Source: Lepidodermella squamata
Lineage: Eukaryota > Animalia > Gastrotricha
NCBI GenBank assembly: GCA_047495785.1
Contig: JBLDXI010000033.1
Span: 2,356,001-2,420,000, forward strand
Length of the DNA stretch: 64,000 nt
Reading direction: 5' to 3'
Both the position numbers and the translations under genes were made by a program. A model generated the notes under the pieces. That model was not told the DNA's origin, made no database searches, and saw only the letters and a list, made by a program, of their open reading frames with translations. Within the stretch, counting starts at the first letter, position 1, and each line of letters opens with the position of its first letter. Of the stretch, positions 8,001 to 42,098 are shown one piece after another.

Positions 8001-11000
8001 AGACAATAACGCGAAATAACGTCAACTTCATTTCCGGTGCGATTGCGTTCTTTCTGCAGCTGTCAGAACTACACCGCCCAGCGCTGAATCTGCAGTCGTG
8101 GTCCAATATGAGTGTACCAATATTAAACCTCGTACTATCTCTTGCATCGTCCACTACTTACGGCGTTGATTTGGTTAACCATGCTGAGATGCTGAAATTA
8201 GCCTCAAATTTGCTAGCAGGAGCAATCGTGAAAGACTTGCGTAAAGTCGAGATGATAACTTACACGAAACCTCGCGATAAGTGGTTGCATGTAGCCGGGC
8301 CGAATGCTGAACAGAACCGTCGCATGATTGAGTCACTGTTCGTCCACTGCCTGCGCATGCTGAACGTGTTCAGTCATGTTTTTCAAACAGTTGCGAGCGG
8401 CAATTCAACTTTGCTGCATTTGATCCGTGGGCCTGTTCGAAGTATCACGTCAAGTGCTCAACAGGCCATTAATCGCGGCCGTGCTGCGGTTGAATCGAAC
8501 TCGGCTGCCGGAATTCCTCCATCCGGCGCAAATTCCTCCACAGGGCCTGCAGCGGCTATGCAAGCTGAGTTTGACAGGTTATTCCGGGGAAATACGCTCG
8601 GCGATTGCATGAACATTCCACATTTCAACCGAATTCATAAGCAGTTGCTGAAAGCTTTCGCTTCATATCGTCTTTCATCGGAGCTGAGTTTATCAAACGA
8701 AAAATTCGGCCAGTTACTATCGGCCGTCCTCCAACTTTTGTCTACCATTTTCGAACTGTCGACGTTGAATGAAATGAAGCCGATGCTGGAGGAAACGGTC
8801 GCGTATCTAAAAGCGGCACTCCTCTTCCAACCAAATGGCGTTATCGAGTCTGTATATCAGCTGTTGAAAGCACTGTTCGGCTGCTCTATTGTAGCTCATT
8901 GGGATCCGAACACAATGTTGGGTGGAAGTGCCCAGTCGAGTTCGAACAGCGATTTCCAGTCGCCGAGAATCGGACAAAGCCTAGATGTGAGGTCATCCTC
9001 ATCAATGCACGGCTTTTACCACGCCTGCTTCCTCACGCCTTACACAATGCATACCCAGTTGTTAGCCGGAATGTCGACGAATATGACTGCGAGTTCTTCG
9101 CAATTGTTTTCGAGCTTCAACGCCGGTCATGGCGAGGATAATTATTCGCTGCTAGATGATTTGAGAATGTGTGTCCGCCGCCGATCCGCCTTAATTTTTG
9201 AGCAGCGGGCTGCTACAGGCCAGCCTATTACTCGCGCCGATCGCGAACTGGTCGAATCTTTGATTCACCCATTTGAAGCGATTGTCATCCAGTCAATCAA
9301 ACTGTACACGTTATCATCTTCCGATCTTGACACACAAAGAGCAGTTTTGCGCTTGTTAACTCAGCTGATTTATTTGAGGGCCAACTACTCATTGCTAGAC
9401 AGCAACGGAGCTTTTATGCAATGCGTGATTCGTCAATTAGAAGATCTCGATCACCCTTCTGATTTACGCAGGCAATTGTGGCTCGATGATGCTTTCCATT
9501 TCCTATCCGCGGTCGGTTTGAACCCGATTGGCGCGAAACAGCCTCCTCTTTCGTTTGCTGATTTGCTGACGTTGACCGATTCAATTGTCGCAAATACGTT
9601 GCATCTCGATAAACTCATTGCACTGCCGTGCTTGAAGCGAATTGTTGTTGATTTGTTCGTCTGCCACTCGCCCTCTCGCCCGTCCTCTTCGCAACAAATT
9701 ACCAGCGAAGTGTTGGCCCAAATGGAATTTGTTGTCCTCAAGCTGTGTAAATTGACCCACCCTAGGGTGTACCCGTGTTTGATCGTTGTGCTTCAAAGCA
9801 GCCGCATGCAGGGCGAAGATCGCTGGAAACGCGTTTCGCGTCAGATTTCTGATATCGTATTGCCATCGCTGGAAAATCGCGAGACCCCGTTCACCTGCCG
9901 CGCCGATTTCGAGAACTTTGTTTCGCTGCTTTCAAATTTAACGGCAAGTGTTTTCCGCCCGGTCGATTTCATCTTCCGCGTTTTCTATCGCCAGCCTGTG
10001 ACCAACAGCGCCCCAACTTCCATCACAATTTCAACCAATTTAGCAACTATTGTTGGCTTAACTTGCGTCCTGCTAGTTCATACCAAGGAGGATATGCTCC
10101 TTGCAAGAATTCGGGAATTTTTCAAAGAGCCAGCGGGTCAAGAATCACCATACGCTAGTTTGGCCTCTTCATCTGAACCGGAAAATGCTTTCATTTCATT
10201 CCAACTGGACACCATTGTCGATTCTGTGAAGTTTCTTGTCGATAAAATGTCTGACTTGTCAGCTGCTCGAAATGCGGCTTCCAATGCAGATTTTGACTTT
10301 CTCGCGTTCTTGGTATCTAAAAGCCTGCTTAATATACTTCACGTGGTTCATTCTGGTCATTTCCCCCGGTGTATCAAATCACTCAAGTCCTATATTGAGT
10401 CACTCCGGTTGGACACGTTGTGGTCTACCTTCGGAATTTCATACCCGTTACCCACGCTGCTGTGGTACCAATTGGTTGTTTTGGTGACTGGCGGAGTTGG
10501 CCTCCCCTGGAACGACCTTTGCCAATCGCTGGTTGCGAATAGCGCATCTTGGTCTTCTTCATTCATGCTATCGACTCTGTTATCTCTAGCTGCTGATCAC
10601 TTGTGCGAGCGGACGGATGACGTTGAGCGGCTGTCTTGGCTGCTAACCTGCCATTCTACCACGATTTTGTCGTTGATTTCAGAAGCTACGCTCCGCGATT
10701 TAATCGCATCGTGTCACCGCCAAGCACCTGCGAGTGGTTTGCTAGTTCAAGCCGTTGTGGGGGCATTGGAAAAAGTAGCTGAATCGCAATCAACCACCAT
10801 TTCGCCGCATTTGATCTGCCGAGGATTGCACGCTCTAGACAACGTTCATCCTGATCAACAGGTCGTCGCGCTTCAGCTTGTCATCGAAAAACTGTTACCA
10901 ACTTGCAGACAGTGGCCTCAGGTCAAACGCCGAATAGCTGACTTGATCATCAATCTGGCGAGCGAGCTGCATCACAGGAAAGCTCAACTCCCAGCCGAAA

Positions 11001-14000
11001 TCGGCCCTCATTGGATCCAGCAAACTCTGAGCAGCCTACCGCCTCTCATCAGTAACCGGCCCGTGAAAAAGCTCAGGGAGCTGTTCGAAATACCCGATCC
11101 AAGTTCGCTGGACCCGATCAGAGGCAATGAACAGGCCTTGATGGCCGTGACTCCTCTGCAGTTTTTCAAACAACTGAGCTCATTACCGTGTTCAGTCAAC
11201 AGCGCATCGCCTGTTTTGACCGTAAATTTGGCAGAACTCGTTTTATCTCAACCCAGCAGCGACTGGCCGAATTACGTCAACGAATGTTCGAACCCTGCCA
11301 TTTTGGAGCAGCTAATTGTCAGTGCGGCTACTCATTGCCAATTTGCGGGTTTCGAGCGAATGTTGGCGGATGTCAATGCGACTGAAAGCGATTTGACTTT
11401 TGAGATGAACTCGGCATCTCAGTCAATTTTATTCGCATCAAGCGGTGGAAGTGACGTGAACACTAATGTCTACGCCAAACTCGTGAAATCGATTGCTGAA
11501 CGTTGTTACTTACTCGGCAAAGAAGCGACCACCCATTTCCCATTCCCAATTGCCGAAGCAGTTTGTATCGATCGGTTCCCCGAAGATGTCGAAGAGTCGG
11601 CAATTTACACTTGCCCATCAACGGCAAATCGCAGCCGACTATTGGCTTTGATTGCTTATGTCGAATCACTTCACGAGACGTATGCCGATAACTTGAACTC
11701 GCTAGTATTGCTGAGCCAGGTTATGTGCAAGCTGCTGGATATTTGCAGCGGACAACATCGGCATTTGCTTGAAGAAATAGCCGGGTTTGCTGAAATAACG
11801 TGGCTTGCTTCGTATATCCTTGTTCAATATTGCCGTTGGCATATGACGGTTATCAAGTGTTTGCCTGAATCGGATGTGCTAGTTGCGTGTCTCCGTTTGG
11901 CTTGTTACACCCTAGCGACGCCAAACTCTCCAGATGCGAGCTCTTCCGCGAGTTGGATCGCGAATTTTCAGTGGACACAACTGGTTTCACTACTGAGTTT
12001 ATTGCTGCGTTGTTCCGGTATTGCGCCAACAATACCCGACCCGCAGACCAGCCACGCCCGGGTAGTGGTCAACGCGGCGATCGAAGTTTTCCTCCAGCAA
12101 AACGACCGTCCGAGTTTATCTGAGCCGGTATCACTGATGCGAGCGTTATGCTTTTTGTTATCTCGGTTGTCGCCAATCTACGAGTACGCCCTGTTACCTC
12201 GCGAGGCGATTGCGTCCCTAACAGCTCCTGATGCCGAGCCTGGGTTGCATCAGGACGCCATCTCGCCTTACATGTTATTCGAACCAGAAACGCTGTCTGA
12301 TTTCTTGCGGCGCCTCGCTTTCGTCGGTTGGGTGTCGCGGCTTGATTTCGAAGAGATTTGGTCGCGTCTTCTCGGGGTTGTCAATCACTATATTGCTGAT
12401 GGCGATGGCGACCGGCCGAGGGAGGAGCGCATCGAAGCTGCTCATTGTTGCTGTCTAGCTATCCGAGGCTTGACCTCGCTCCTTTGCCGCACCAGGCGAA
12501 TGGCACCGAAGCGACCTTCACAGTGGATAGCGGCTTCTTCGAGTAGCTACGCCAGAAACGGCAAGGTCAATTTGTACTCGCAAATGACCCCGCTTGCCCT
12601 CCTACAGTCGCCGTCATACCGGCAGTACGCGGTTGTGAGAGCCAGGCTCGGTGAGCAGTTCAATTCGATGAATAACTGCCGAAGTCCTGCTCAGTTATTC
12701 TGCGCATTCCTCGACGAAGTTGTGTTGAACTCTTGTGATACCGAAACGTTGATCCGAAATTCAGGCCTCGAACAGTACGCGACTGATGACAGCGACACCG
12801 CCTCTGAATCGTGCACTTCCTCCGTGATGCTGACTGATATGACGACTCTTGGCGATGACCTCTTCGTCGGAGCTTCGCTAGACGTCAATTCGTGCATCCA
12901 ATTTTTGCTCGACCTGTACACGAGATGGCTAGTGCCGTCACTCCGAGCTGTGCCTAACCAAATACCGCCTCGCTGTTTGATTCTCGAATGTGTCACGTCC
13001 CTCGTGTTGATTTCCGACCTATTCACAACAGCCGCGCATTGGGAGACCATGTCATCGGCCCTTTTTGCGGCACAGGGTGAAGTCGGCGTTGAGGACGAGC
13101 AATTGCTACCGATTTTGACGGTCGGCCTCGCCAAAGTTGCCGCCGTCCATCAGCTGCCGGCTAATCAGTTGACCCAAGTCACCAATTTAGTTGCTAACGG
13201 TCTTGCGTCAAAATTGTTGCCGATTCGGATGGCTGGGCTTCATGCTTCGATTTTCCTGATGCAGTCAAGGCATCAGTCTCTTGTCAAGCCAATCATCGAC
13301 AAGATCTTTGCTGATCGGCTTGTTCTTCAGGTCCAGCAACCCGTCATGAGACCTATTGTCAGTGCAATTCTGAATTATTCTGCCGCGTTTTACATCTTGG
13401 AAAATTTCACAAATATTGCCGATTCGAATAATCAACAATTTTTAATCCAGGTACGTAATATTAATTAATTTTCTGTTGGACTAATATATTATTTTTTCTT
13501 CAGTCGATTCATACATTTTTCTCCAACGCACCCGTTGATGAGAACGAGCACCCCGAAGTGTATTGTTTCGTATGCCGCGGCGTTGAACGTTTGGTTCTAA
13601 CCGATTGCATCCAAACGCCAGCTGCCGTTTCTGCCCTGATCACAGCGATTCAAAGCAATTTGAGCCAACTGCTCGACACGAAACGGTGGATTGCTGCGAT
13701 CGGTCTGTTGATCACATGCCTATACCGGCTTGCAGCAACAGCGCAGCGGCCTGCTAGCGTTTCTTCGAGCGGTGTTGTCAACGTTCAACAGCAGCAACAA
13801 GTGGCTGATGCCACGCGATTCGCAAATCTGGAACGCGTTGCTACGTTCGCCGAAAAAGCGCGTTCGTCTGCTATCGATTCCCAGCGCCAGTTGCTTCCAG
13901 GTATTATTTCATCATTTTCCAATTATTAGCACCAAATATCTATATCTAAATTGGAAGCTCTTTGCTTATAAACAATTTTAGACCTGTCGGAAAAATTATA

Positions 14001-21236: not shown

Positions 21237-24161
21237 ATGCCTCTTCGATTGGACGTCCGCCGCAAATTGTCTGCCAGGTCTGACAGAGTTAAATGCATTG
21301 AGCTTCATCCTACCGAGTCCTGGCTTCTTGCGTCTCTATACAACGGAAGTGTCCATATTTGGAATCACGAAACTCAACAGCTTATCAAATCGTTTGAAGT
21401 TTGCGATGTTCCGGTGCGATCAGCCAAATTTGTTGTTAGAAAAAATTGGGTTGTCACAGGTTCAGATGATATGCAAATCAGAGTGTACAATTACAACACA
21501 TTCGAGCGTGTCCATCAATTTGAAGCTCACTCTGACTATATCCGTTCTATCTGCGTTCATCCGACACAATCCTTCATCTTGACGAGCAGTGATGACATGA
21601 CGGTGAAACTTTGGGATTGGGATAAGAAATGGTCATGCGTTCAAGTGTTTGAGGGACACACACATTACGTCATGCAAATCGTGATTAATCCTAAAGATAA
21701 CAACACATTTGCTACTGCATCGCTTGACCGAACTATCAAAGTTTGGCAATTGGGCTCTCAAACCGCCAACTTCACATTGGAAGGCCACGAGAAAGGTGTG
21801 AATTGCGTTGACTACTACCACGCTGGCGACAAGCCTTATCTTATTTCTGGCGCTGACGATCGACTTGTTAAGGTGCGTGGAATTGATTTTATTTTTCTTA
21901 ATTATCGTAACATGGCTTTGCTCACAGATCTGGGACTATCAAACCAAAGCCTGCGTTATCACTTTGGACGGACATGGCCAAAACGTTTCTGCCGTTTGTT
22001 TTCATCCGGAGCTCCCCATCATTTTGAGTGGCTCTGAAGATGGAACTGTACGCATCTGGCATGCGAACACGTTTAGACTTGAATCAACTTTGAATTATGG
22101 CATGGAGCGAGTCTGGGCTATCCATGCTCAGCGTGGTTCCAACAACGTGGCCATTGGCTACGATGAAGGATCTGTCGTAATTAAGCTTGGTCGCGAGGAG
22201 CCGGCAGTTTCGATGGACTCGACTGGAAAAATTGTGTGGGCCCGTCAGATGGAAATTCAGCAGGCTAATATCAAGACTTTGGGCCCCGATCAGGAAATTA
22301 AGGATGGCGAGAAGTTGGCTCTTGCTGTCAAAGATCTAGGAGCCTGTGAAATTTACCCGCAATCAGTGCAACACAACCCAAATGGGCGTTTCGTTGTCGT
22401 TTGCGGTGACGGCGAATACATCATCTACACAGCCATGGCGCTGCGCAACAAAAGTTACGGATCTGCTCAAGAATTCGTCTGGGCAGCCGATTCGTCAATT
22501 TACGCCATTCGTGATGGCACGACTCTTGTAAAAATTTACAAAAACTTCAAAGAGTCCCGCACTTTCAAGCCAGAACTTGGCGTTGAAAATATTTTCGGAG
22601 GATTCTTGCTCGGTGTCCGCACCGTCGGTGGTCTGTGCTTCTACGGCTGGGATACCCCTGATCTCATCCGCCGAATTGAAATCATGCCGAAAGCTATTCA
22701 CTGGAATGAAAGCGGCAACCTAGTCGCTATTGTTACCGAGGATTCCTACTATGTCCTGCGGTACAAGCCAGAAAACCAAGTGAAGGACCAGTGGACAGAA
22801 GACGGCTATGAAAGTGCCTTCGAAGTCATCGGTGAAATTGAAGAGTGTGTCAAGACAGCGTGCTGGGTGGGCGACTGCTTCATGTACACTTCGTCCGTGA
22901 ACCGTTTGAACTATTTCGTCGGTGGCGAGGTTGTCACTGTGGCTCATTTAGACCGAACTATGTACCTGCTCGGTTACATTCCCGCCGACAACCGCATTTA
23001 CCTGGCCGACAAGGATCTAGCCGTCGTTTCTTTCTCGCTCCTCGTTTCAGTCCTCGAATACCAAACCGCGGTGATGCGGAAAGACTTTGACACCGCTGAC
23101 AAGGTCTTACCATCGATTCCCCGTGAACAGCGCACCCGAGTCGCCCATTTCTTGGAAAAGCAAGGCTTCAAACGCCAGGCTCTGGCCGTTACCACCGATT
23201 TGGAGCATAAATTTGAGCTTGCCGTTCAGCTTGGCGAGCTGAATACGGCCTACGAGATTGCCCAGCAGAGCGATAACGACCAAAAGTGGCGAGTTTTGGC
23301 TGAATTGGCCACTGGACGGTTAGTTTCTTGTTCTAAATAATGTTTGAACCGTTTTATGGTGGTTTTTTTAGGGGCGATCTGACTCTGGCAGAAGACTGCT
23401 TGCGCCGTGCTAACGATTCTTCTGCCCTCATTCTGCTGGCAAGTTGCACCGGCAATCGAGAGTTGATGGCATTTGCCGGTGATCAAGCCGCCTCGGCTGG
23501 CCAGAATAACGCCGCTTTCTTATCAGCTTTCGCTCTCGGTGATCTGGACAAATGCCTGCAACTGCTTACTTCAACCGGTCGTCTCGCCGAGGCTGCCTTT
23601 TTCGCCCATTCATATCGACCATCCGCTATCCCGCGCATTGTTTCGGCGTGGAGGGCTAGCGTCACGAATACAGCGGCCTCGACTGCGTCTGAGCAGCCAG
23701 GTGCTGAAAAAGCAGCCGCGGTTTCCGGAGGCGCCCGGGTTGCCGAAATGTTGGCCGATCCCACACAATACGACAATCTGTTCCCGCAGTTCCGCGAACA
23801 CATCAAGCTGGAGGAAGATTCCGCCGAAAGAAAGACGCTGATCGAGCAGCTTCCCGCCCGGCTATACGGTCGGATTCAGCGTGAAGGCTTGTTCGATGAC
23901 ACTGACGTTGAGAAGTTGAAACATGTGCTCCATGCTTCGGATTCGCATTCAGCGCACGTCTTCAAAGCAACACCCAAGCCGGTGCCTGTAGCAGCGGCGG
24001 CGGCTGCAACGGTCGAATCATCCCTGGCAACCGAAATCGAGAGGGAGCTCGAGGCTGAAATCGCAGATCTTGACCTGGACGACGATCCGACCGAGAAAAA
24101 GGCGGCGGCGGCTGGATCTGGCTTCGACGACGAGGATGACTTCTTGGACACGGACGCATAG
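21237..24161 (+). CDS. COPB2: Coatomer subunit beta-prime
   Basis: [29 protein letters not shown]40 repeats, [16 protein letters not shown]; two introns (~21873-21927, ~23319-23371). Confidence 0.97.
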
Positions 24162-25439: not shown

Positions 25440-25655
25440 ATACCCCATCGGTTGATTCCGTCAGGGAAGTTCGGGAAAGCTGTGCTAGATTCAGAGCTCT
25501 TTGGCAAAGAAGATTCACTTTGATCATACAATTTTATTTTTCTGCGTAATCCTGGTTTTCAACGTAAAGAGAGTTGTTCCTAATTTCGAGCTTATCGTAA
25601 AGATATTCAACTATCTCAAGGTAGTCTTTCGATCTCGCCAGAACTTCCGCAGTTT
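25440..25655 (+). repeat. Direct repeat copy 2 (MTG1 3'-end remnant plus 3' end of the ankyrin gene)
   Basis: Translates as IGLIPSGKFGKAVLDSELFGKEDSL* allowing for mutation, matching the MTG1 end RQGKFGKVMLDSELFDKEDSL*. Confidence 0.8.
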
Positions 25656-26331
25656 TGTCGTCGCTGTTTTTCAAAGATTTATCGGCTCCTTTTTCGCAAA
25701 GTAATTTCACAATCTCGAAATGACCTTGAAGAGCGGCAAAATGTAGCGCCGTTGAATTGGTAGAATTTGTTCCATTAATATCGGCACCGCGTTCAATCAA
25801 AATAGACACGACTTCGCAATGGCCGTTATTTGCGGCCAGGTGGAGCGGGGTGACTTTTTCAACGCTGTTGTGAATAGGTTCGTCCAACAGGGCACCGCTT
25901 TCGCAAAGAAGTCTGACAATTTTTGTCATGCCTTGCGCAGCCGCGACGTGTAGGGCTGAACCTTGCCGGCGGCCCTGATGGTTCAAATCAACGCATCGAG
26001 TTGTGAGTTGTTCTACAACCTTGTATTGATTGTTTTCGGTAGCGACCAGCAGGGGCGTTACTTTCTCCTCACTCGAATTTACGCAGTTAACATTTGCATT
26101 CAGCAGTAGCAGGTAATTTATCACTTCGACTCGTCCATTAGCAGCTGCCGGATATAAAAGGCTATCTGTTAAGGAGAGAGCGGATCCGATGGGTTTTGAA
26201 TGAAAATTCAGCTGCTCTTTTCGCTTGATCTGCGCCAGCTCTTCTGGTCTGCCCTCTTTAGCAGCCTCGAACAACTGCAGGTATACTGGGCTGTTGATAG
26301 TGATGAATCGTTTTGACTCGCCATTCCCCAT
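25534..26331 (-). CDS. Intronless ankyrin-repeat protein with a predicted N-myristoylation motif
   Basis: About five ankyrin repeats (TPLLVA, SALHVAA, TPLHLAA, TALHFAA). ATG at 26331 gives MGNGES (MGxxxS). Confidence 0.85.
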   Translation of the reverse strand: MGNGESKRFITINSPVYLQLFEAAKEGRPEELAQIKRKEQLNFHSKPIGSALSLTDSLLYPAAANGRVEVINYLLLLNANVNCVNSSEEKVTPLLVATENNQYKVVEQLTTRCVDLNHQGRRQGSALHVAAAQGMTKIVRLLCESGALLDEPIHNSVEKVTPLHLAANNGHCEVVSILIERGADINGTNSTNSTALHFAALQGHFEIVKLLCEKGADKSLKNSDDKTAEVLARSKDYLEIVEYLYDKLEIRNNSLYVENQDYAEK

Positions 26332-26754
26332 CTCAGCGTTGAAGCCTAACAAGGTTCTGGAAATTAACTAGCTTTAGAGCCGCATCAATCTTAAAATTTC
26401 TTTTTCTGCTGACTAAGGCAAAAAATCAACAAAGTTGTACGCCACTGGCCATGACTCCTGTGGAGCATTTCGTGGCGTATGACGACGGCGTTCGTGAAAT
26501 CTCATTATTTACGTTCCGACGTGGCAAGGGAGCTAGTCATAACACTTGAGTTCTGCATTATACGTTTGTGATGCGAGGTGATTAACACGACGGGGCCGGA
26601 TCATCACTGTGTTCCCACCGGCTTTTCCCTAAATCCTTTCGTACGAAAGTCAGCGATGCAATAGACTGGCGTCAACGTTCTCAGAATTGTGTAGCTGAGT
26701 AGTAAAAATAGACTAGAGGGCACGGTGAATATGGAGTGATGTGGGCTGGTTATA

Positions 26755-27875: not shown

Positions 27876-28313
27876 TAGTGCTGCAACATTTAAAAGGTCG
27901 CTGACGAAGGATTTCAGCTTGGTGCATTGAGTACGCCGAGGTTTTTTTAACATGAAGGGATCCTGTATAATAATCCTCTAAATTAGAAACGAATACTCGA
28001 ACTTCGAAAAGTTCGATAGTAGTAACCTGCTGCACTTATATCATTCACTTTAAGGTCGAGCGGAACGGCGCACTTTGTATTCATATTATGTTAGGAATCT
28101 TAAAACCCGATCCGTGATAGCTGATCATATTAACTTACCAAGTGTAAAAAGACTGAGACAACATTATTTCACTCACTTTTTGTTTCATTGTCACGTTCGG
28201 TTGCACATCCTATCAGTTCAGGTACATCGTCCTCAGCTGCATCGGCTTATTATGACGCACTATTCTTGTTTTCAACTTAAACTGGCTTGTACCTAGTACA
28301 TAGTAATAAGGCT

Positions 28314-30064
28314 ATGCTTTTGGCGCACGAGACACGTTCCGGGCGAACTTTTTTTGCGACTTGCACCACGCTTATTTACCTTTCGGCAGCGACGGAAGCG
28401 AGCGCATATCCTTGCAATGCATGCACGGTAATTTCCAACAATGTACTTTGTTAAATTAGCAATTTTCAAACTGATTTTAGTCGCGGAATCTTACTCGCAA
28501 AGCAAGTTTTCGAAGATCTTCATGAAGTTGTTATTTGAAAATTCGATAATATTTGATCAGCGACGACTGAATGCCCGTTTACAAGACCCGTTCCGCTGCC
28601 TGAACCAGTAACAATTAAAGTTGCTGATGCGGCGACAACGACCGCCTGGTCGATCGCATATTCGACAGATGCTCCTAAAAACTCTACAGTTGGGGTAGAG
28701 TAAGTTAAAAAATGTCAATATTTCTTCTTCATTCCAGATTTAATTAGCCAAGGGTTCACCTACACACCAATCGATATTTTTGGTTATGAAATGAAGATGG
28801 GTAAGCGGTGTGTTTTCGATGAGTACTTTCTGCCATTCCGCTATCTCACCGAACCAATGGTTTGCGCTGACTGGTGCCGCCGCGAGCCCAGTTGCTTAGG
28901 TTTCATGGCTTCGATGTACAGCGGGGCCTGCGAGGCTTTCACAAAATGCACAGAAATCGAAGACGAAGGATGGGTGATATTCTACCGCAGGCTAACACCA
29001 ACTACAACCCGGCTATGGGCTGGAACGTCTCCTACACCAGGGAATTTTATAGACTTGGCCACTGTTCCTGATGTTTTCGCTCTCGTCAAGCCGATACAAG
29101 AACATTTTTCGTCATACGGCAGCCTATTGAAAACAATTTTTGCGGCTGTCAATGCATCAGGATTTCCCACCGACACCGCGGCCAAATACAAGTACACAAA
29201 GTTATCACTTGCGCAGACTATTGTTTTCGAGAGAAGCTTGGAAATGGCGTGGAAGGCGAGAATAATCTTCGCCTATCAACCAGTTGAAGGCTGGCAGGTC
29301 GAAGTGCCGACTGAACCAATTGACGCCACGCCTCTTTCCACAACAAAAGCGTCGGCTAGTGGTAGGAAATACAAATGCAACCAAGGCACAGTCGACGCAG
29401 CTTGCAAACTGTTAAAAATGAACAACGAAGGAAAAATGTTCTTGATGCCGTGGAACTGGGAAGGTTTTCATAACAAAGACCTTGCGAAATCACCAGAACC
29501 TGACTCAGTCTCACCCTTATTCTCCATCGTTACGTTGTGCTACGGTGAAGCTCCGTAAGTTTTTTTAAAAGTAAGTTGAGCTGATGAAATCTAAATCTCG
29601 CAGGCCAACTTATTCGAACGAACTAATTTGTCCCGACCCTGCCATGCTCAATGCAATTGGTGCACTGGCAACTTCGGTGTTCAACACATACTCAATGCCA
29701 TTATACGTCAGTTTTTTTAATTTTGGCGCGTTCGTTGTCAAGGCAAGTATTATCTTATTAGGTCGCTTCAATTTTGGGCACTCCGGTTTATGAAGATGAA
29801 GAAGGGCGACCATCAGTTACGCATTTCTACGGCAGCGGCGTCGACTTTTTGTGCGGCGTTGGCGTTTACGGAACCGCCGAGCGCGGCTTCGACGAATCGT
29901 GTAATTTGATGATGCGATACCTTCGAAAGCCGCAATTCGGCGCCGCGATGCCTTGCGACGACTCTTACGTACCTGCTCGCGACGGCAACGTAGGTTGCGG
30001 GGAGACCTGGTGGCCTGTTCCTACAGTGCACTGCGACCGTACGATTGTCGGCAGTAAAAAATAG
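28314..30064 (+). CDS. Putative secreted Cys-rich protein with a PAN/apple-like motif
   Basis: Signal-like first exon (MLLAHETRSGRTFFATCTTLIYLSAATEASAYPC). CADWCRREPSCLGFMASMYSGAC matches the PAN CxxxC..C.(A/G)F pattern. Further exons at ~29604-29706 and ~29762-30064. The 5' exon structure is tentative. Confidence 0.6.
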
Positions 30065-30465
30065 ATCTTTCCTCCTCTTCAAATATCTAAAACTTGCCTA
30101 CTCCATGTTCCACTCTTTCCGTAATTTTTTTCTCCCGAATTCTCCCAAACTATAAATAAATCTTCTTCGTTAATGTTTTAAAGCCGTGAGTCATAGACGT
30201 CACCGCGCATGCTTAATGTTCAAAACAGATAAAAAACATGTCGATATCGATCTCGAACGAAATAAATAATTGATCATGAATGAAAGCATGCTTGTAGATC
30301 ACCTGAGTTGAGGGTGGTGTTTGTTGCCTGGGAGCCATTTTTTTGTTGAATCGAATTGTTTTATCCATCTCGCTCCGGGAATCGATAATTGCGTGCATTC
30401 TAAGCTCCGCCTTAAAAAAGGATGCTCTAAGTGAATTGGTTTATATGCCTGAATTGAATTTCAAG

Positions 30466-33400
30466 ATGCGGAAATTTGTGGCCATTTTGTCCACACTCTT
30501 GATCGGCTATTCGGTAGCTCAATCGGACAGTAACTCAGGTGGATTCGATGCCAGCTTGTCATTTGTTGACATCAATTTGAATGTTGCGGCGGAAGCAATG
30601 CCGGTGTTCTTGGCCGAAAATACTGCCGTCAGAAAAGCATCGCCTCTTTTGGTCAGATTAGCCTACGTCGGACCATCTGCCAACGCACTCGATGCTCAAC
30701 CGTTGACTTTAAAGCCAGGCGAAACAACATTTCAAAACCTGTTGCGGCAAATAAGCGTTTGTGTTATAAGAGTTCAGCCTGTTTTCGTTGAAAAAAATAT
30801 GACATATAGGTGACGGTTTCGATTGTGGATGGTGAAATTGACACAACAGAAGACTCAGCGATGTCGGCAGTTTTCGTATACTTGACTCGGCCTCTTCTGG
30901 ACGAACCTTTCCCAGGGCAAAGCCTGGTAGACGGGCCGAACGGTGAGCCCCTTTGGTCACCAGAGACTCTTTACGTTGGCGAGCATTCTCTGATCGGCAT
31001 GAAGAAAGGCGAGACTAAAACGTTGACCTTCGAGTCATACTTGCTGAATTTCGCAACTGAACCTGCTATGTGCGGCGAGGCTGTCTTGGTGTGGCGATTC
31101 GACCCTCTGGGCACGTCTGGAGATGAAAGCTCTGCGAACAAAACAATTGCCGTCAATGTCGATATCGACTGTTCGTCGTTGACTGGCCCGACGAAGCAAT
31201 TTGTCGAGATAATACCGGATTTTCAAGCTGGCGGCCACCGAGCAGCTGTTCTTGTTTACGACGGAGGGCGTATGACTAAATCATTGGCTTATCTTGGCTA
31301 CCCCACGGATGAATGGGGTGACTTTTTCTCAGTGGCAGATCCAGACACCATGTCTTATGTCGGTCGGATGCGGCTATTAACAGGCCGAGAACGTCGTCAA
31401 TCTCGAGTGTTAAATGGTGACGACTGTCTCTACCAAAGCTCTGTCTCTCAACTGGATCCGCAAGAACTGGACGTGTTGGCTGACATGCTTGAATATGCTC
31501 TGGAAAACAACGGCTCAGCTGATGCCAGCCGGGTCAAACGTGACACTCCAGGTGGTGTCAGCGTCGGTTTACGACCCGGTTCTCTACCGGATGGGATATT
31601 GCAAAATCTCGGCAATCAGCTGATCGATATCATTCCTGAGGCGCCGCTGCTGGATAATGGAGCTGACTTTTCCGGATCTTCGGGTTCCGGTAACTGGAAC
31701 TCGTTGGCTGATATGCCCGATGAGTTGAAAGAGGTGATTCGCTTCATCCGCTTGATTGGACGTAGGGATTCTAGGCTCGATGAAGTGTTGTTCAACCGTA
31801 TCAACGATCCGTATACTCTAACTCAACTAATTAGGGGTCAGTTGGAAATTCTGTTTTTAATCCTTATATTCCATGATTTATTTATACAGTTGCACAAGAC
31901 ATTGACGCCGTGAGCAAACGACGCGATATTATTTCGGGATTATTCGGCGGGGCTGCTCCAGCTTCATGCCCCGGAAAGTGGGCCCTGCGATTGATGGCAT
32001 TCATCCGAGATATTAGCCAATTTATCGCGCATTCGCGATTTCCAGTGAAAGATAAATCCATGTCAAGTGCGATGAGTACCAGCGATAATGGCGCCTACAA
32101 AGCTCTATGCTGGGTCATGCAGAATCTTATCGACGAAGAGAATGACCTGCTAGTTCTGAATGATGGCATTCTCGACTGGAACGAAAGGATGGGCTTCGAT
32201 AAGGTCATCCAAACTGCGCTTCTTCAAAAACAACTTGAAGTAGCTTTGATGTCGGCTGACAATACTACTACTGGAAATTCGAGTGGAATTCGAACGAAGC
32301 GAGATGCCGAGTTTAATTCATCGGCTGACGCAGGATTCGACAGCCCAGTGCCTGATATGTTTATTGAAGCTGGGTCGAGTTTGGCCGCAATGGCCGAAGC
32401 GTTAACATCAGATGCCAATGGGACAATGCCGGAATTTCTCACCAGCGCTGACGATACTGTCGACCCAATTGTAACTTGCGACTTTGATGTGAAGAATCTT
32501 TTGAAGGTCTCAGCGCCGTATTGGATTTACTGGACAGGTAAATTATTCGAATTATATCAAACCTGTGTTGCTTATTATTACATTTTTCTAGAGAGAGACG
32601 GGCGAATTTTTCAGGGTGTCCGATCACCTTGGACAGCTGCTTACAATCGGCGAATGAATTGGCGACAAGTGGCTACTGTAAAATGCTCCAGCTGCACAAC
32701 TGGCGATGTGAAAGACGATTGGGAGGTAAAAGGCACCATAGCTCATCAGTTCATTGATTGATCATTAACAACTTTCCAGACACCTGAAGATCCTATTGTA
32801 GACATTGCTTACAGTGATGACGACTATGCGGGCAGTATTATGACGGGAAATAATGCCGGAATCACGCAAAAATATCCACAGGTCCTAAACAACTACGCGT
32901 CTCTGCTGCAAGAAATAACTGGCTTTCAAAATCCGGGCCAAAAGGGCAAAGACTGGTCAACTGGGAACCTCCAGTCAGATGACGATTTTGAGAGGGACAA
33001 CCAGATTGCCTCGAATATCTATTACCAGCAGTGGGTCAGGAACAACCAACAGGGATCAAGTGGAAACTCTGATCAAGGGCAGATACGCAATGGAAATAAT
33101 AACCAAGTGAACAATCAGCAGCAGCAGCAGGGTCCGATGAACACCGGCGGACAGCAGCAGGGAACCATGAATTACCAAAACCGAGTGGTAAATCAGCAAA
33201 CAATCTATCAGTCATCGCAGACGATCTATCGCTCTTCAAATACCTACTATCGACCTGGCTACTCGTCTTCATACTCTTTGCCGCTGGGTTTGATGGCAAT
33301 GGCTGCTTTAGGCGGTTCAACATACTACCGGCCTGCTACAACCTACTACTACCAGCCGGCATATGTTGTGCCGACCTATTCCATTAACTATTACAGACCC

Positions 33401-34747
33401 GCGTATTCCGTCAACTACGCATACGCTGCCCGACCAACCTATTCCGCCAGCTATGTTGCCCCTCGTACCTCGTATGGCGTTTCTTACGGCTACCAACCTG
33501 CCGCTTCTTATGGATATGGGTATGCGGGGGCGATGGGCAGTTCGCCTTATAACACCGGGTACAGCGCATATCAGCAGAATAACTACGGGACGGCTGGACT
33601 TCGAACTTCAGCCAGCTATGGTAACGGAATGTCTAATGTCAATAATGTTCCCCGAACTAATGTCCAATATGGTCCTAATACTGGAATCGCTGGAAACTAC
33701 AGACAGCCCGCCGTCGCTAGTGTTAGCGGTATGTATAACACAGGTTTAAATACCGGACTAGCCACGGGCACGGCTGGTAGTTACGGAACAGCTACTCGCA
33801 ACCAGGGAACCAATAACGCAGTTCCTACTCGACAAGCAGGCAGTAACGGAGCGGCCCGACCAACTGGGTCGGTGTCTGGCTCTGCTGGCATGGCTTCAAA
33901 TCAAGTTCGAACCAACAATTTGAATGGGTTCCTGAGCGAAGGTCGCGTGTCAACTGGCAACTCAGCGTCCTCCGTCAATGTAGCTGTTAGAACTCAGACC
34001 GGTGGAAATACAGCAAATGTTGGGCTGAACAGCCAGCAAAGACCAACCGGTTCGGTCTCAAGCTCAAACAGTGGCTCAATGAATAACCGACCATCTAACA
34101 CAGCTTCGTCGGGAGTTTACATCAACAGTAACAATAACCAGCGTCCCTCGGGTACTGTCAACACGGGTTCAGCTTCTGGATCTGGTTCAATCGGCTCAAG
34201 TTCCGGGACTTCGAATTCTAGACCGACTGGACTGATGTCGTCCGGCTCATATAGCGGCTCTGGTTCACTGAGCTCTTCAAACAACTACCGGCCGATATCA
34301 CCATCAGGTTCAAACATTGGCTATCCTAGCAACAATAGGCCGATTACAGCTGGGTCATCTTCGGGCTCTTCAGGCAGCAGGCCCTCTGGAACGGTATATT
34401 CAGGGTCTAACTCAAATAGCAGACCTGTTCAAGGCAGCTACTACGGCGGGAGTGTTGTCTCAGGAGGTGCTGTTGCATCAAGCAGTGGCAATAGCCGACC
34501 CTCCTCGAGCTCGAGCTATGTTTACGGTTCATCGTCCTCTAATAACAACTATCGCCCGTCTTCATCTGGATCATCATCAGGGTCGTTATTCGGAGGCATC
34601 AGCTACAGCAGTGGAGGCAGTAGCAGTGGTACCCGCTTGTCATCTTCGAGCCTGGGCGGCAGTAATACCCGTCAATCATCGGGCTCATCCAGCAGCCGCA
34701 ATTCGGGATCTTCAAGCAGCGGCACTCGGACCAGAACACGATCCTGA
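30466..34747 (+). CDS. Novel secreted proprotein, paralogue A, with a Q/Y/G/S/N low-complexity tail
   Basis: Signal peptide MRKFVAILSTLLIGYSVA. Exons 30466-30756, 30810-31836, 31890-32537, 32592-32725, 32780-34747 splice in frame. Clear homology to 35311-37917. Confidence 0.85.
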
Positions 34748-35310
34748 ACATATTAACGCTCTATTTTCTTCATTTTAAATGCTCCGATAACCTTATATTA
34801 TACAATTTGAATCTCCGGAAACTCTGTATGATAAGAATTTTCGACTTTATTTTATCACCACGTAGTCTGAATAAAATCGCATGCTGTTATAACGCACGAA
34901 GACGAGGTGTTTGTTTTGAAGGTTACCGAGTTCGAAGGATAGAACATCACCCCCGCTTTATTAATTATTTCTTAGACAACATTAGTCTGAGAGCTTTCTA
35001 GGCACGTGCATGTCTTCAGTTCGCTGACAATGACTCAGAATTGAGAATATCGTTAGGGTTAAGGTATAAACAAAAAGCGGCTTCAATAATTAATAAACAT
35101 TTGTTGCTAAGCTTTCACGTCACGTTTTGTTTCGACGTGCGCGCGGGAGGGGAAAAAACGAAAGGCGATCGATACGCATGGAACAAACTCGTCCACAATC
35201 GATCGAATGCAGTTTCGATACGTCTAAACCCAAGCAGCAGGGTTACCATCACGTACTACTCAAAAATAGCAAGGCATTGTGAAAAGCTCCGTTATTAATA
35301 GATACAGGTG

Positions 35311-38300
35311 ATGTATCAGCAACTTTTGCTGACTGTGGCAACCCTTGGTCATGTTGCCAGTCTCGGCACGACCCCAGGCAGTAATGACTTTGGCCTGCCA
35401 ACAATGGCACCGCAGAATATTCCGCTGCCGGAAAGCGCTGTCGATGTTAGACTTGTCTTGAGCAGTGGCCCGGCAAAGAATCAGCAGTTGACAATTAACC
35501 CAAATGCTCCACTAGCTTCGCAATTGTCGAAAATATCGGTACATCGAGAAGGATCAAATCGCCTAATTTATTGTGTAAAATTGTATTTTTAAGATTCGCG
35601 TCCTCGTTAACAATGGTTCAATCCGAACCGACGCTGATCCTGCTCTGTCGTCAGTCTTCGTCTATTTAACAAGGTTACCTGGCATTAACTTGACTGACTT
35701 GGAAGACCCGACTGGCAAGATTATCTGGTCCCCGGAAACTCTCTACATCGGAGAGCATTCTCTGCAAGGTTCGAGTGTGCCAGAACGTTATCACCTAACA
35801 TTAAGCCCCTTTCTTATATAGGAATGAAGAAAGGCGACACAAAATCTCTGACCTATGAATCATATTCGTTAAACGTTCAGTCAGAACCAGTTCTTTGTGG
35901 CGATGCTATTTTAGTTTGGCGTTTCGACCCATTCGGATCGTCACGAGACTACAACGCGACTAATCATACGCTGGCATTCAACGTAACCATCTCTTGCTCA
36001 GACTCCCAGCTAAAGAGCCCGAGATCTGTTGAGATCATACCTGATTTTCAATCTGCAGGCCATCGTGCGGCGGCGTTGATCTACGGCGGTGGCCAGCTGA
36101 AGCGTGCCATTGTTTACATGGTAAACTTTTTCATTTTCTCAATTGCTTGAGGTGACATTTTTCGCACAAAAGGGCTATCCTCAAGATACATGGGCCCAAT
36201 TGGAGGCAGTAGGTGACCCTAATGTGCTGGCCTACATCGGCCGCATGAGACTCCTGACTGGCCGAGAGCGGCGGCTGAAGAAATCGACAGAAGGCTGCAT
36301 GTATGAATCTTCGGTCTCGAAACTGGATTCTTCTAGCTTGTCCCAACTCGCTGATGCACTTGAGTCTTACTACAGTTGGGTTAGTAGTTCAGCGAGTAGT
36401 AAGCGCGCGAAGCGCCAAACATCACCGATTTCGCTTAACACTGGCCTTCGACCGGGCGCCCTTATCTCTGGCAGTATTGTAGCACCTGTAGCGCCAGTGG
36501 CACCCGTTGCAGCTTTCTCACCTTCAGTTGCGCCCGTCGCGCCCGTTGCGCCCGTTGCGCCCATTGCTCCCGTTGCTCCCGTTGCACCCGTTGCACCCGT
36601 TGCGCCCGTTGCGCCCGTTGCGCCTGTAGCACCAGTGGCAGCTGTTACTCCCGTTGCTCCCATTGGAGCATTCGTTCTACCCACGGTCGGGGTATCTGGA
36701 CTGTCTGCATCCATGAACCCTTCTGATATGATTAACATGATGTGGGGCATGTTACCCAATGGTATGGACGCCTCATTTTCGGGTACCATCAATTCGTCTA
36801 GCATTTCACCGGACATGATTCCTGATGAGTTGAAAATGGTGATTCGCTTCATTCGTCTAATTGCTGATAGCGACGAGCGACTTCAAGCTGACCTGTTCAG
36901 CAAGCTGGACAGCACAACAACAAAACAACTTATCAGAGGTAAATTAAAAGGCAGATTTTGGTGAAATAACTTTAAAATCATCTTTCAGTTGCGACAATCG
37001 TGTCAAGGATAAGCATGGATCCCACTATTTTCGGGCAGCTCATGCTCACGAAACAAAACTGCCCAGCAAAGTGGCTCAACAAATATGCTAGATTTGTCAC
37101 TGAGATGTACGGACTGATGACAAGTATCAGATTTCCTGTGAAAGATGTCGCTCCTCTAATGGCCAACTCCTCGGATGACGGTGCCGTTCGACGCACTCTG
37201 TGCTGGGTCTTCAACAATCTGGCTAACCAAGAAAACGATATGTTAACATCGTACGATGCCAGTATGACTTGGACGTCGAACTTGGGCTTTGACACGTTGT
37301 TTGACATTGCTTCAAGCTGGGCGCAGTCAAATTCGAAAGGGGATGCGGCGAATAAATCAGTCCCTGTAAGCGGTAGCAACATAAACTTTGCTGCTAACAT
37401 CGGCTCTGGATCTTCGGCAACATTCGGACTGCCGTCCTCCTCAGTCAATGTCAACATGCAACCAGGCAGTAGCGGCGCTGACGTAAAAGTAGGCAGCCAA
37501 CAACAAGGTGACCTTGGAACCAGCATGTCATGGTCAGCTGGCTTGGGCAGCCTCGGAAGTATCGGATTAGGTACCAGTGTAAACTTCAATCTACCAATGC
37601 TTAGCATGAACGTCAACGGAATCGGACGGAAACGTCGACAAGCCTCGGCTGCAGGCTGCAGTGTTGATATCAATCAGTTTATCTCTTGGACACAGCCATT
37701 CCCAATCTTTTGGATGGGTATGAATATTGTTTTATCCAAAATAAAATACTGACTGAATTTGTAACTTTTTTCAGAACGAAGAGGGAAAATCTATCAAGGT
37801 GTACGTTCGCCGCTGACTAGCAAGTCAGATCAGAGAGTCAACTGGCGATCTGTTGCCTCGCTCCAATGCTCCGGTGGCTGTGGGTACGGGACAGGTTATG
37901 GCGAAGACGATTGGGATGTAAGTATTACATTTAAAATTTTGGTTGCACATTACTCTCTGTCAAATTATAGCTTATGATTGACCCTTTCATCGAAGTATTC
38001 ATTATGAGCTTCTACGGATATGGCACTCGTTACGGATACGGTTATGGAGCCAATTCATACGGTTATGGAAACAGAGGTAGTTCGGGTTCTGATAAAAAGC
38101 AGAATAACGGCGGTGCGTTGTTCCGCGATGTCTCTGGGGTCGGAGGGGGCTCTGTCACAAACCAATCAGGTGGCAAGCAGAACCCCGGTTCAAACGGGGC
38201 TGGTGGTCAGGGGCCCAGTGGAACTGGTAATAACGGCGGGTCTACTAGCGGTTCCGGAAATTCAAGGCCAAGTGGAGGTAACGTTACGCCTGGGAATGTT

Positions 38301-41196
38301 GGCAGTGGTTCCAACAATAACAAGGGCCCAAGTGGTTCGAGTAATGGAGGATTCACGCAAAATAACAATCAGGGACGTGTTGATCTGTTTGGCAAAACCC
38401 AAGGAAGCCAAACTCAGTTCAACTACAACGTGAAATACCAGTATCAAATCTACTACAAAATCTATTATGGCTACAATAATAAGCAGCCCAGCAATGGTGG
38501 TAATCAAAATGGTGGTTCCTCATCTGGCCGTCCTGGGACCGGTACTGCAAAACCAAATATTAAAGTGGTGCGCCAACGGCAAAACATGCAGCAGCAGATT
38601 TTGTTAACCTACGTCGTGAAAAATAGCGCTAACAACATCCTACTAAGTGGCGGCATGGATTCAAACGGTAGAATTCGAGTTCCGATCGGTGGCTCGGTTG
38701 GAACAGGCAGCATTCAATTCCGAACGCCAGCGCCAAACAATATGAACACTCGCGGCAACGGGATAGATGGCGGGATGGTCAATGGTCAGTGGGTTAATGG
38801 ACAATGGGTGGCGTGGAACTCTACCAATTGGAGCACCAGGTCATACACAGATCGCAACCCTGCTTCCTCATCAACCACAAGCCAGAGAAGCTCTACGACA
38901 ATCCGAACATCTCCAGTTGCTTCGAGCTCGACGACTCAGCGAACCAATAGTCCAGGGAATGGAGCTTCATCGACTACTTCGAACCGGCCTTCATCGTCAA
39001 CTACAGCCATGCGAACCAGTTCCGTTAATGCAGCCGCCTCATCATCCACAACTAGACAAAGCAGTCCGAGTTCTACTATTTCAACCAGTGGAACAACATC
39101 AACTTCTAAACCTCCGAGCGCGTCGCCATCATCGTCTTCTACAATTTCGACAACAAAAACACCACAAGCCGCAACAGCAACAACAACGACAACAATCAAA
39201 GCCACTTCGTCATCGACTGTTTCGCAATCAGCTTCAACTTCGACTGCTAAGCCATCATCGTCTTCTACAATTTCGACTTCTACTTCTTCGACAACAAAAA
39301 CTCCACAAGCCGCAACAGCAACAACAACGACAACAATCAAAGCCACTTCGTCATCAACCGTTTCGCTATCAGCTTCAACCTCGACTGCTAAGCCGTCATC
39401 GACCGCAGCTACTGCTTCAGCTACCCTGTATGACTGCAACGCTAGCTCAAAGTATTTCAACCTGACTGGCTCAATGACGTGGGATGAGGGCAGCCAAAAA
39501 TGCAAGGCGGCTGGTGGCAGAATGGCCAGAGTTCGCTCAGCCGAGGAGCAAGCTGCAGTCGCCATCTTAGCTAGTGAGCTTGAGCCATGCTATTGAGTAT
39601 TGTCTTCAAATTATGTATTTTTAACAGAGCTGGGAAGTTCGACGTGGGGCTGCAACGGTTACTGGATCGGTGGCAGAGCGGCTGCTGGGAATTCGTCATA
39701 CTTCTGGGAGGAAGGCACGCCTTTCACCTACACAAACTGGGCATCGACGCCGGACAAGCAGCCTGACGGTTCTGGCTGCACCGCGGGCACTCCAACAGGT
39801 GTTTGTCTTCGAATCGCCTACGGAGGCGTTTGGGATGATATTTATTGCGCTACTGCTAACAAGATGCAAGGTGTCATTTGTGAAAAGTTCTGCAACAATG
39901 ATGCAGTTACTGCATCCAGTGCATCGACCAGTTCGACCGTTAAGGCCAGCTCGGCTACAACTACAACAACGACAACAACGAAATCATCCAGCCCTGTAAC
40001 ATCAACAAAACCAATCGAGACGACAACGAAGGCTTCTAGCTCAACCACTACTACTACTGCTACCACTACAAAAATTACTACGACTACCCCTACTACCACT
40101 ACAAGTACTACTTCTACTACCACCCCTACTACCACAACGAGAACAACTTCTACTACTACCCCGTCTACCACTACAAGAGCTACTTCTACTACTACTGCTA
40201 CCCCTACTACGACCACAAAAACAACCTCCACCACAACTAGCCCAACGACCACTACAACTACAACCACTACCCCTACTACGACCACAAAAACAACGTCAAC
40301 CACAACTAGCCCAACGACCACTACAACTACCGCTAAAGCGACGTCTACAACTACGACAACAGCACCAAAGACATCTAGCTCAACTACGACGAAGAGTTCG
40401 GGAAGTTCGACGACCAAGAAAAAATCGGGTGGATCTGATGATAATTCGAAAGAAGACAACTCAAAGGACGACAACTCCGGTGAGAGCAAGTCAAAGACCA
40501 CAGCAAAATCAGCAACTACTACTACGACAACAACAGCGAAGACTAGTACTGCGAGCACTGCGAAGTCAACAGCTGCAACTACTACAACGAAAGCAACCAC
40601 TGCTGCGCCAACAACGACAACTACGACCAAAGCAGCGACTACGACTACGACAGCTGCTACGGTTACGCTGTACGACTGCAACCCGAGCACCAAGTATTTC
40701 AACCTGACTGGTTCAATGACGTGGGACGAGGGCAGTCAGAAGTGCAAAGCTGCCGGCGGTCGCATGGCGCGGGTGTTGACGGCAGATGAGCAAACCGCAG
40801 TCGCTAATTTAGCTAGTAAGTCTTAGCTGAAAATATCTATTCTGTGATTTACATTTCGCTATTTCAGAACTCGGAAGTTCAACTTGGGGCTGTAACGGTT
40901 ACTGGATTGGTGGAAAGGCGACGTCGACTAACGCGACTTTCTTCTGGGAAGACGGCACGGCTTTCAGTTACACCAATTGGGCATCGACGCCTGACAAGCA
41001 GCCGTCGTACTCGGGCTGCAACTCCGGGAGTCCATCGGGTGTTTGCACCCGTATCGCCTACGGAGGCGTTTGGGACGACATTTACTGCGCGACCACCAAT
41101 AAAATGCAGGGAGTGATCTGCGAGAAGTACTGCAACAGTAGCGCAACGACGGCGAAGAGCTCTGGCACTACCACTACCCTGAGAACTCGCAGCTAA
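35311..41196 (+). CDS. Novel secreted proprotein, paralogue B, with (VAP)n insert, Gly/Asn-rich region, mucin tracts and two C-type lectin domains
   Basis: Signal peptide [17 protein letters not shown]. Shared core blocks with paralogue A. CTLDs with YWIGG, YTNW, WDD, GVICEK, each split by an intron at the same position. Ends TTTTLRTRS* at 41196. Confidence 0.85.
36478..36665 (+). repeat. 9-bp coding tandem repeat, (Val-Ala-Pro)n
   Basis: GTTGCGCCC-type units, about 18 copies. Confidence 0.9.
39125..39400 (+). repeat. Internal tandem duplication in the Ser/Thr mucin tract
   Basis: [44 protein letters not shown] occurs twice, nearly identical at DNA level. Confidence 0.85.
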
Positions 41197-42098
41197 TTCA
41201 AGACCCGGTTTCAAATTATTTAGATGGACTTTTTCGATATTACCCGATGCACTTTCTTTTTCTGCTGTTCTTGGCTGAAGAATAAAATTTAAAAAAAAAT
41301 AGACATTTCGTATTGTTTCATTTATTTTTTGCAGCATTGATTGACAAAACTGGCAGCACAAATGCAGTCACATACTCGAAAACGTACTCCATTATATTAT
41401 AATTAATTCTGAAAAGAACAGAAAAGTTATATCAACGACGACAAGAAGACGTGTAACATGAATCCGCGCAACGATTGCCCCAGCTCAATCACAAATAGAA
41501 GGGTTCGTATTGATCACGACAAAGAGAAACCAAAGCAAGTCATCTCTCGAGAGCAGTTCATAGACACATTCGTTAAATTTTTCACTAGAAGTCCGCTATA
41601 TAATAATACTATAGTATTTTTGCCTACGCTATATCGTTAGGCCATTCTCAGACACCAGACAATAATACGATTATTTCAGTGAATTCAGGCACATTATGTA
41701 ATAAGCCCATTTTTCATCATTACAGGGTTGCGAAAGACGACATACGATAAAATATAATATTCAGGCGGGTGGGTGGGTGGACAAAAATTGCACAAGCCAG
41801 GGTACACGGAGAGGCAGGTTTTCAGATACGCCCGGTCATGGTAGTTCTTTAATTTGATCGCACTCACTTCACAATTTGTTCGACGCGTTTTCAGTTCTAA
41901 AATCTGACTTGAAAAAGTAATTTGTTATAGTGCGAAAAAAATCATATCAAGGTTACATAGAATTCGAAGTAAAAAAACAAGCGTGGCCTAGCGTATAACG
42001 AAGATAAGCGGGCAAAAAACAAAATTCGATTTTTTGGATTTTAGTGGTGAAATCTCAACTCTTGGTTTTTTACGCATGACGTGAGTAGAAAAGAATCG

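Follow-up and report, generated by a model that had tools for sequence, protein, structure and literature searches.

The window analyzed here is a 64,000-nucleotide stretch of the genome of the gastrotrich Lepidodermella squamata (GenBank assembly GCA_047495785.1, contig JBLDXI010000033.1, positions 2,356,001 to 2,420,000), and its central portion contains two + strand genes, A and then B, which are arranged head to tail and whose products share a conserved core and end in unrelated tails. Our preferred interpretation, to which we assign a probability of roughly 55%, is that A and B belong to a family of large, secreted glycoprotein precursors, restricted to their lineage, that are processed by a proprotein convertase and build an extracellular material; members of the family have to date been found only in the L. 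squamata genome and in one uncultured relative. The genes themselves, their splicing and transcription, purifying selection, their paralogy, the enrichment and conservation of candidate cleavage sites, the lectin domains of B and the absence of detectable homologues are supported directly.

Candidate convertase sites in a shared core

After splicing, the cores comprise residues 1-700 of A and 1-787 of B, signal peptide and linkers included, in place of the ~550 residues first estimated for them in the prediction that preceded this analysis (hereafter the original prediction), and the two are 45% identical over 367 trimmed columns of a pairwise alignment. All of the sequence blocks that had been listed as common to the two proteins are present in the spliced products (pairwise alignment and tblastn), and the shared cysteine spacing proposed for them holds throughout, with eight core cysteines aligning one to one (residues 185, 218, 303, 466, 513, 636, 687 and 690 of A with 160, 193, 283, 521, 568, 720, 771 and 775 of B). 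Four shared introns had likewise been claimed, and each intron of A is indeed matched in B at the same position and in the same phase. As judged from their sequences, the two genes are tandem paralogues.

The first half of the core consists, in order, of a beta-rich N-domain with two cysteines, a basic motif that we term site 1, a 48-residue piece with one cysteine, site 2 and a ..GLRPG.L motif; the second half comprises a variable linker, a helical region with two cysteines, another variable linker that carries site 3, and a block of ~65 residues that contains three cysteines and ends in DDW. In A, the N-domain (30810-31385, + strand; residues 98-289, ~190 amino acids) is predicted to be all-beta, includes Cys185 and Cys218, and contains the aligned blocks VFVYLTR, WSPETLY, CG..LVWRFDP and VEIIPDF..GHRAA. 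The central region (31692-32206, + strand; residues 392-545) is predicted to be helical, spans the intron at 31837-31889, and contains an aligned block of 23 letters as well as LCWV..N; both the strands of the N-domain and the helices of the central region were seen in low-confidence models. The C-terminal conserved block (32477-32725, + strand; residues 636-700) spans the intron at 32538-32591, contributes three cysteines and follows the pattern C....P..I.W.ER.G.I.QG.+.P....NWR.VA..CS..C...W, with 12 columns invariant in the four family proteins available (alignment A4).

Inspection of the N-termini of A, B and P0001, a metagenomic homologue described below, revealed hydrophobic stretches and small residues at the probable cleavage position; in A (30466-30522, + strand), MRK is followed by 14 hydrophobic residues and then by SVA-QS. 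No membrane span was found in A or B: A has no further hydrophobic 19-mer, and B has, beyond its signal peptide, a single hydrophobic run, formed by an (Ala-Pro-Val)n repeat. This repeat is encoded by a 9-nucleotide tandem repeat (36527-36665, + strand; Tandem Repeats Finder and translation) in the linker that leads from site 2 to the helical region, and is absent from A. Both proteins are predicted to enter the secretory pathway by way of an N-terminal signal peptide and to escape retention in the membrane, in keeping with the secretion first proposed for them.

Each core contains three R-X-K/R-R motifs of the furin type, identical to those named in the original prediction. In A, site 1 is RERR (31386-31397, + strand; residues 290-293) at the end of a conserved 12-letter block, site 2 is RVKR (31530-31541, + strand; residues 338-341), after which the conserved ..GLRPG.L motif follows, and site 3 is RTKR (32291-32302, + strand; residues 574-577) in the variable linker that precedes the C-terminal block. 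Their counterparts in B, also on the + strand, are RERR (36263-36274; residues 272-275), RAKR (36404-36415; residues 319-322) and RKRR (37627-37638; residues 710-713), the last lying seven residues before the first cysteine of the C-terminal block. The earlier placement of all such motifs in variable linkers does not hold for RERR, which forms part of a conserved block. Shuffled sequences yielded an expected 0.17 (A) or 0.11 (B) motifs per core (P<=0.0004), and none occurs in the tails (655 residues in A and 1039 in B, 1694 together), despite an arginine content of 3-5%.

Comparison with the two family members of the second species, g1 and g2, extends this pattern. Site 1 is kept as RERR in A, B and g1 and is lost in g2; at site 2, RVKR of A aligns with RAKR of B and RKKR of g1, and RRRR falls within the same linker of g2; the linker of site 3 holds RTKR (A), RKRR (B), RGKR (g1) and RFKR (g2). 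In the four proteins from two species, an R-X-K/R-R motif therefore occupies 11 of 12 site positions, the second species retaining five of its six, even as the surrounding linkers are otherwise unalignable. A and B display the sequence features of furin-type substrates, namely a signal peptide, no membrane span and conserved, above-chance R-X-K/R-R motifs. Because the sites are enriched, confined to the core and kept across species, we infer that cleavage of both proteins at these positions by a furin-type convertase is plausible.

A pathway for maturation can be proposed on this basis. The N-terminal signal peptide would take each protein into the secretory pathway, where the core would fold into its beta-rich N-domain (~190 residues), helical region and small cysteine-containing C-terminal block; a furin-type proprotein convertase would cut this core at up to three R-X-K/R-R sites. 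If all sites were cut and all cysteines paired, the odd counts would call for a disulfide between the 48-residue piece released by cleavage at sites 1 and 2 (one cysteine) and the last fragment (three cysteines), such that the former would stay bonded to the tail-bearing portion of the protein. The cysteine counts thus make disulfide-linked subunits plausible.

Gene structure, expression and tails of A and B

Gene A (30466-34747, + strand) encodes 1355 amino acids in five exons (30466-30756, 30810-31836, 31890-32537, 32592-32725 and 32780-34747, stop included), separated by introns of 53, 53, 54 and 54 nucleotides (30757-30809, 31837-31889, 32538-32591 and 32726-32779). Gene B (35311-41196, + strand) encodes 1826 amino acids in nine exons (35311-35538, 35594-35768, 35822-36120, 36152-36938, 36989-37717, 37775-37917, 37971-39573, 39628-40815 and 40868-41196), the splice sites of which were read from the sequence; the feature had originally been thought to end at 37920, but B continues for a further 3.3 kb. 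Neither translation contains an internal stop. The introns of both genes are short, with GT..AG borders and lengths of 52-57 nucleotides, except for a putative 31-nucleotide intron of B (36121-36151, + strand). This intron is the sole canonical in-frame solution at its position, has no listed joint in the transcript contigs described next, so that its borders are putative, and shares its position with an intron of g2; it is absent from A. Relative to A, B has two additional introns, this unconfirmed one and the RNA-supported intron at 35769-35821.

Two public sequencing runs cover the stretch, X1, whose designation as RNA was a guess, and a DNA run from 2024. Contigs of X1 skip the four introns of A exactly (30756 to 30810, 31836 to 31890, 32537 to 32592 and 32725 to 32780), loose ends of X1 contigs join exons 1 and 2 as well as exons 2 and 3 of B, which supports its first two introns, and X1 depth is zero across the spacer between the genes (34822-35223). 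These observations indicate that X1 is complementary DNA (cDNA), and hence that A and B are expressed and spliced as modelled, apart from the third intron of B. Four low-depth joints between opposite strands, seen in X1 contigs at 35292-35935 in the 5′ part of B, are probably assembly artefacts.

Comparison of the window with both runs gave, among the best-supported 40 of 112 variants in A, 31 synonymous and nine non-synonymous changes; within the core, the same best 40 of 112 include 21 synonymous versus four non-synonymous. Set against 980 synonymous and 3085 non-synonymous sites, the 31 and nine variants correspond to a ratio of non-synonymous to synonymous polymorphism (pN/pS) of ~0.09 in A. 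Gene A is under purifying selection.

The tails differ completely between the two proteins, as the notion of interchangeable tails had anticipated. That of A (32780-34744, + strand) is 655 residues long, lacks cysteine, and passes through a Gln/Asn-rich zone, a Tyr-rich zone (24% Tyr in residues 861-940) and a Ser/Gly/Asn-rich zone, with repeated N/S-R-P-S/T-G motifs. An X1 cDNA contig departs from the window by three in-frame, 3-nucleotide insertions or deletions in its Gln/Asn/Tyr-rich portion (at 33116, 33343 and 33616), which suggests length polymorphism of a low-complexity region. The tail of B opens with a Gly/Tyr/Asn-rich part bearing YGYGYG motifs, followed by a Ser/Thr-rich, mucin-like part with a 141-nucleotide repeat (together 37971-39425, + strand). 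Beyond these lie a first C-type lectin domain (39426-39887, + strand; residues 1273-1408, split by the intron at 39574-39627), a Thr-rich mucin-like spacer of ~60% Thr with 36- and 69-nucleotide repeats (39888-40667, + strand) and a second C-type lectin domain (40668-41127, + strand; residues 1669-1804, split by the intron at 40816-40867). Overall, the tails are dominated by S/G/N/Y in A and T/S/G/A in B, and both are only mildly basic. The last four residues of the two proteins, RTRS, are the same (34736-34744 and 41185-41193), in tails that are otherwise unrelated.

All searches and structure predictions reported here used single exons rather than spliced full-length proteins, and the intron-split halves of the lectin domains were searched apart. 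The two halves of domain 1 match positions 2-32 (E 7e-4) and 41-107 (E 5e-3) of Pfam Lectin_C (PF00059), and the C-terminal half of domain 2 matches the same family at E 9.8e-5 (23.5 bits against a gathering cutoff of 22.6); the profile parts matched by the halves (2-32 and 40/41-107) are complementary, and one half alone exceeds the gathering score. Measured against the EPN or QPD plus WND motifs of C-type lectins, domain 1 has QPD and WDD and domain 2 has QPS and WDD. In such lectins, QPD goes with galactose-type binding.

The tails would provide the material properties of the assembled product. With its Gln/Asn, Tyr and Ser/Gly zones, the tail of A could be cohesive and cross-linkable, and that of B, which combines a Gly/Tyr stretch, O-glycosylatable mucin regions and two lectin domains, could be hydrated and glycan-binding. 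Most likely, A and B together build an extracellular structure, be it cuticle or scales, eggshell, adhesive or mucus; as read from their compositions, the tails fit these four about equally well.

Relatives, fold and genomic surroundings

An exhaustive phmmer search with exon 2 of A against 1.84 billion representative proteins returned a single match, P0001, a 224-residue protein from an environmental metagenome (41% identity to A, E 7e-13). The search produced no self-match, indicating that the proteins of the source genome are not included in that collection. P0001 could be located on four environmental contigs, where two short-intron genes of the family lie in tandem (contigs L001-L003): first g1, which is incomplete at the 5′ end, and downstream of it g2, which encodes P0001. 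The survey of taxonomic distribution suggested earlier thus ends with one relative, an environmental organism that has the same tandem pair. The tail of A shares two short collinear islands with that of g1 (E 0.006 and 0.054), and the tail of B shares none. A quartet test favoured the grouping of A with g1 and of B with g2 (0.79 by resampling of estimated log-likelihoods, not significant), and the duplication that produced A and B is probably older than the split of the two species. A small two-cysteine motif, CNHGLH.GQDDPNG.LCENPGQG, occurs in both g1, in the linker before site 3, and g2, in the tail (L003, ~1850-1950 and ~5880-5960), and is absent from A and B.

Further searches for relatives brought no others. 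In a collection of 5.8 billion proteins, a profile of the N-domain recovered P0001 only, a profile of the C-terminal alignment had no match (a length filter there excludes even the known 449-residue relative), and a profile search with the 610-residue open reading frame (ORF) of the relative was swamped by low-complexity words and failed to return the query itself. Patterns from the N-domain had no match among metagenome contigs of the JGI; two short matches to the NWR.VA pattern in JGI metagenomes lay on bacterial-looking contigs and were set aside as chance. A tblastn search with both cores found no third family copy in the window. The literature yielded nothing on the metagenome accessions, nor on secreted, cuticle or adhesive proteins of gastrotrichs.

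The earlier failure to recognize any domain in the core was borne out across Pfam, PDB sequences, the ESM Atlas and the 1.84- and 5.8-billion protein collections, none of which linked it to a known family. Pfam at E<=1 gave only noise for every core exon of A, B and the metagenome relative, with no match to vitellogenin or large lipid transfer, ZP or collagen domains; PDB profile searches at E<=10 (alignments A2 and A3) likewise yielded noise, and an ESM Atlas feature search with exon 2 of A, P0001 and the 610-residue ORF of the relative found no match. Atlas neighbours of P0001 had template modelling (TM) scores <=0.39 and were dismissed as meaningless, the Atlas model itself having a predicted local distance difference test (pLDDT) score of 0.38. 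AlphaFold2 models of exon 2 of A (six alignment rows, pLDDT 39.6) and of the C-terminal half of g2 (seven rows, pLDDT 41.3) were unusable because the alignments are too shallow, and a Foldseek search of the PDB with the poor model of exon 2 returned noise (best probability <0.5). An end-to-end match of the core to a characterized family was therefore not obtained in sequence searches, and the structure models are too poor to speak to the question. At the level of sequence the core family is new; its fold may still prove to be a known one.

The remainder of the window, which has a GC content of ~45% overall, contains several further ORFs. An uninterrupted ORF of 2410 codons at 6236-13468 (+) matches the N-HEAT, bridge and C-HEAT domains of huntingtin; the huntingtin gene is normally rich in introns, and here it is nearly intronless. 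A gene of the coatomer beta-prime or alpha type is indicated at 21237-24161 (+), where two ORFs (21808-23340 and 23340-24161) match COPA/B beta-propeller and TPR domains. An ankyrin-repeat ORF lies at 25534-26352 (-), and directly upstream of A, at 28791-29558 (+), a 255-residue ORF with a Cys-rich, PAN/Apple-like start and no Pfam match at E<=1 may represent an exon of a different secreted protein. The ORF at 62023-63189 (-) encodes a PIF1-like helicase domain (E 8e-44) and could represent a cellular PIF1 or part of a Helitron-type element. Rfam gave no match in 28000-42000.

Alternative readings and significance

Several considerations weigh against a family of convertase-processed matrix precursors. 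Secretion, cleavage and disulfide linkage are deduced from the protein sequences, the 'structural matrix' is drawn from composition, both structure models are unusable, which leaves room for a known fold in the core, and the lack of site 1 in one of four proteins casts some doubt on it as a cleavage site. This last point, together with the location of site 1 inside a conserved block and a shift of site 3 by tens of residues among family members, would suit an arrangement in which the R-X-K/R-R motifs are left uncut, the proteins function as single chains (a mucin-like lectin of the gut or a surface and its partner, for example), and the basic motifs serve in a task such as glycosaminoglycan binding. 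We consider this unlikely, however, since the exact motif stands at 11 of 12 positions within otherwise unalignable linkers and is missing from long tails that contain 3-5% arginine, a pattern typical of maintained convertase sites. An improbable alternative for the core itself is that it derives from a known domain family, such as an extracellular matrix module of beta-sandwich and helical parts, that has diverged past sequence detection in a fast-evolving and poorly sampled phylum. With four sequences in hand, profile searches and AlphaFold are weak, and gastrotrich proteins are apparently near-absent from the collections searched, as the missing self-match indicates; against this, neither Pfam at E<=1, PDB profiles at E<=10 nor Atlas features gave anything, exhaustive phmmer reached no characterized family, and the best Foldseek probability was <0.5, though from a poor model. 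A bolder extension in the opposite direction, which we regard as quite doubtful, would make the core a new fold and a convertase-triggered assembly module, whose disulfide-held C-terminal piece would present a Tyr/Gln/Ser tail in A or a mucin-lectin tail in B, the partners co-assembling into a gastrotrich-specific material, either the tube adhesive or the scales of the cuticle.

Gastrotrichs possess duo-gland adhesive tubes, and a two-component temporary adhesive secreted by the glands of these tubes, in which A would be cohesive or surface-binding and B would link glycans through its lectin domains, offers a further explanation by analogy with the duo-gland adhesives of flatworms. The retention of the A/B tandem pair in a second species and the QPD motif in lectin domain 1 of B, a motif associated with galactose-type binding, speak for such a system, as does the comparison with Mlig-ap1 and Mlig-ap2 of Macrostomum lignano (Wunderer et al., 2019; PMC6410801). 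These too form a very large secreted pair with long low-complexity or repetitive regions, in which one member, Mlig-ap1, joins them to a C-type lectin domain as B does, and glycosylation is involved in the adhesive (PMC6410801); flatworms are the proposed sister phylum of gastrotrichs (PMC6468455). The two pairs nevertheless have no sequence relation, the conserved A/B core is not found in the flatworm proteins, and A and B yield no Pfam match to the vWD, C8, TIL, EGF, LDLa or TSP1 domains and lack the extreme Lys/Arg repeats of the flatworm adhesives; their tails are only mildly basic, and furin sites go unmentioned for Mlig-ap1 and Mlig-ap2 in PMC6410801. Tyr/Gly-rich and mucin-like tails would also suit cuticle, eggshell or mucus equally, and the two-component bioadhesive envisaged in the original prediction, for which we found no support over cuticle or scales, eggshell or mucus, strikes us as rather improbable.

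The preferred reading, of processed precursors of an extracellular material, has counterparts among better-known proteins. Among convertase-processed structural precursors, the cuticle collagens of nematodes are cut by BLI-4, ZP-domain proteins bear a consensus furin site, and the vitellogenin and apolipophorin of insects are cut at RXXR beside poly-Ser tracts. A and B resemble these in their signal peptides, in R-X-K/R-R motifs placed between folded modules or beside low-complexity sequence, and in their predicted assembly into extracellular material, but differ in having no collagen, ZP or Vitellogenin_N match, three sites each and a different core. Mucin-like C-type lectin proteins (PF00059) are similar to B in that its Ser/Thr-rich repeats (up to ~60% Thr) flank two lectin domains with the usual cysteine pattern; this part, however, is only a C-terminal appendage of B, has no equivalent in A, and is joined to an unrelated core. 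The Gly/Tyr-rich tanned proteins of eggshell and cuticle (trematode eggshell precursors, insect chorion and cuticle proteins) are small and lack a large conserved pro-core with convertase sites, and their likeness to A, with its Tyr-rich zone (24% over 80 residues), and to the YGYGYG stretches of B, both potentially cross-linked through tyrosine, is purely compositional.

Poorly sampled phyla commonly yield orphan secreted families, and the value of A and B is moderate in that they are, so far, one of many lineage-specific secreted orphans. Yet the cuticle, scales, eggshell and duo-gland adhesive of gastrotrichs have almost no molecular description, and an expressed, conserved pair with an unrecognized core provides a concrete handle for localization and knock-down work. 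The core may add a new extracellular domain family and, were the assembly-module proposal true, the pair would constitute a two-component secretion system without counterpart in other phyla. In a neglected lineage, A and B would exemplify the modular construction of matrix proteins, in which a conserved, processed core is combined with swappable low-complexity, mucin or lectin tails.

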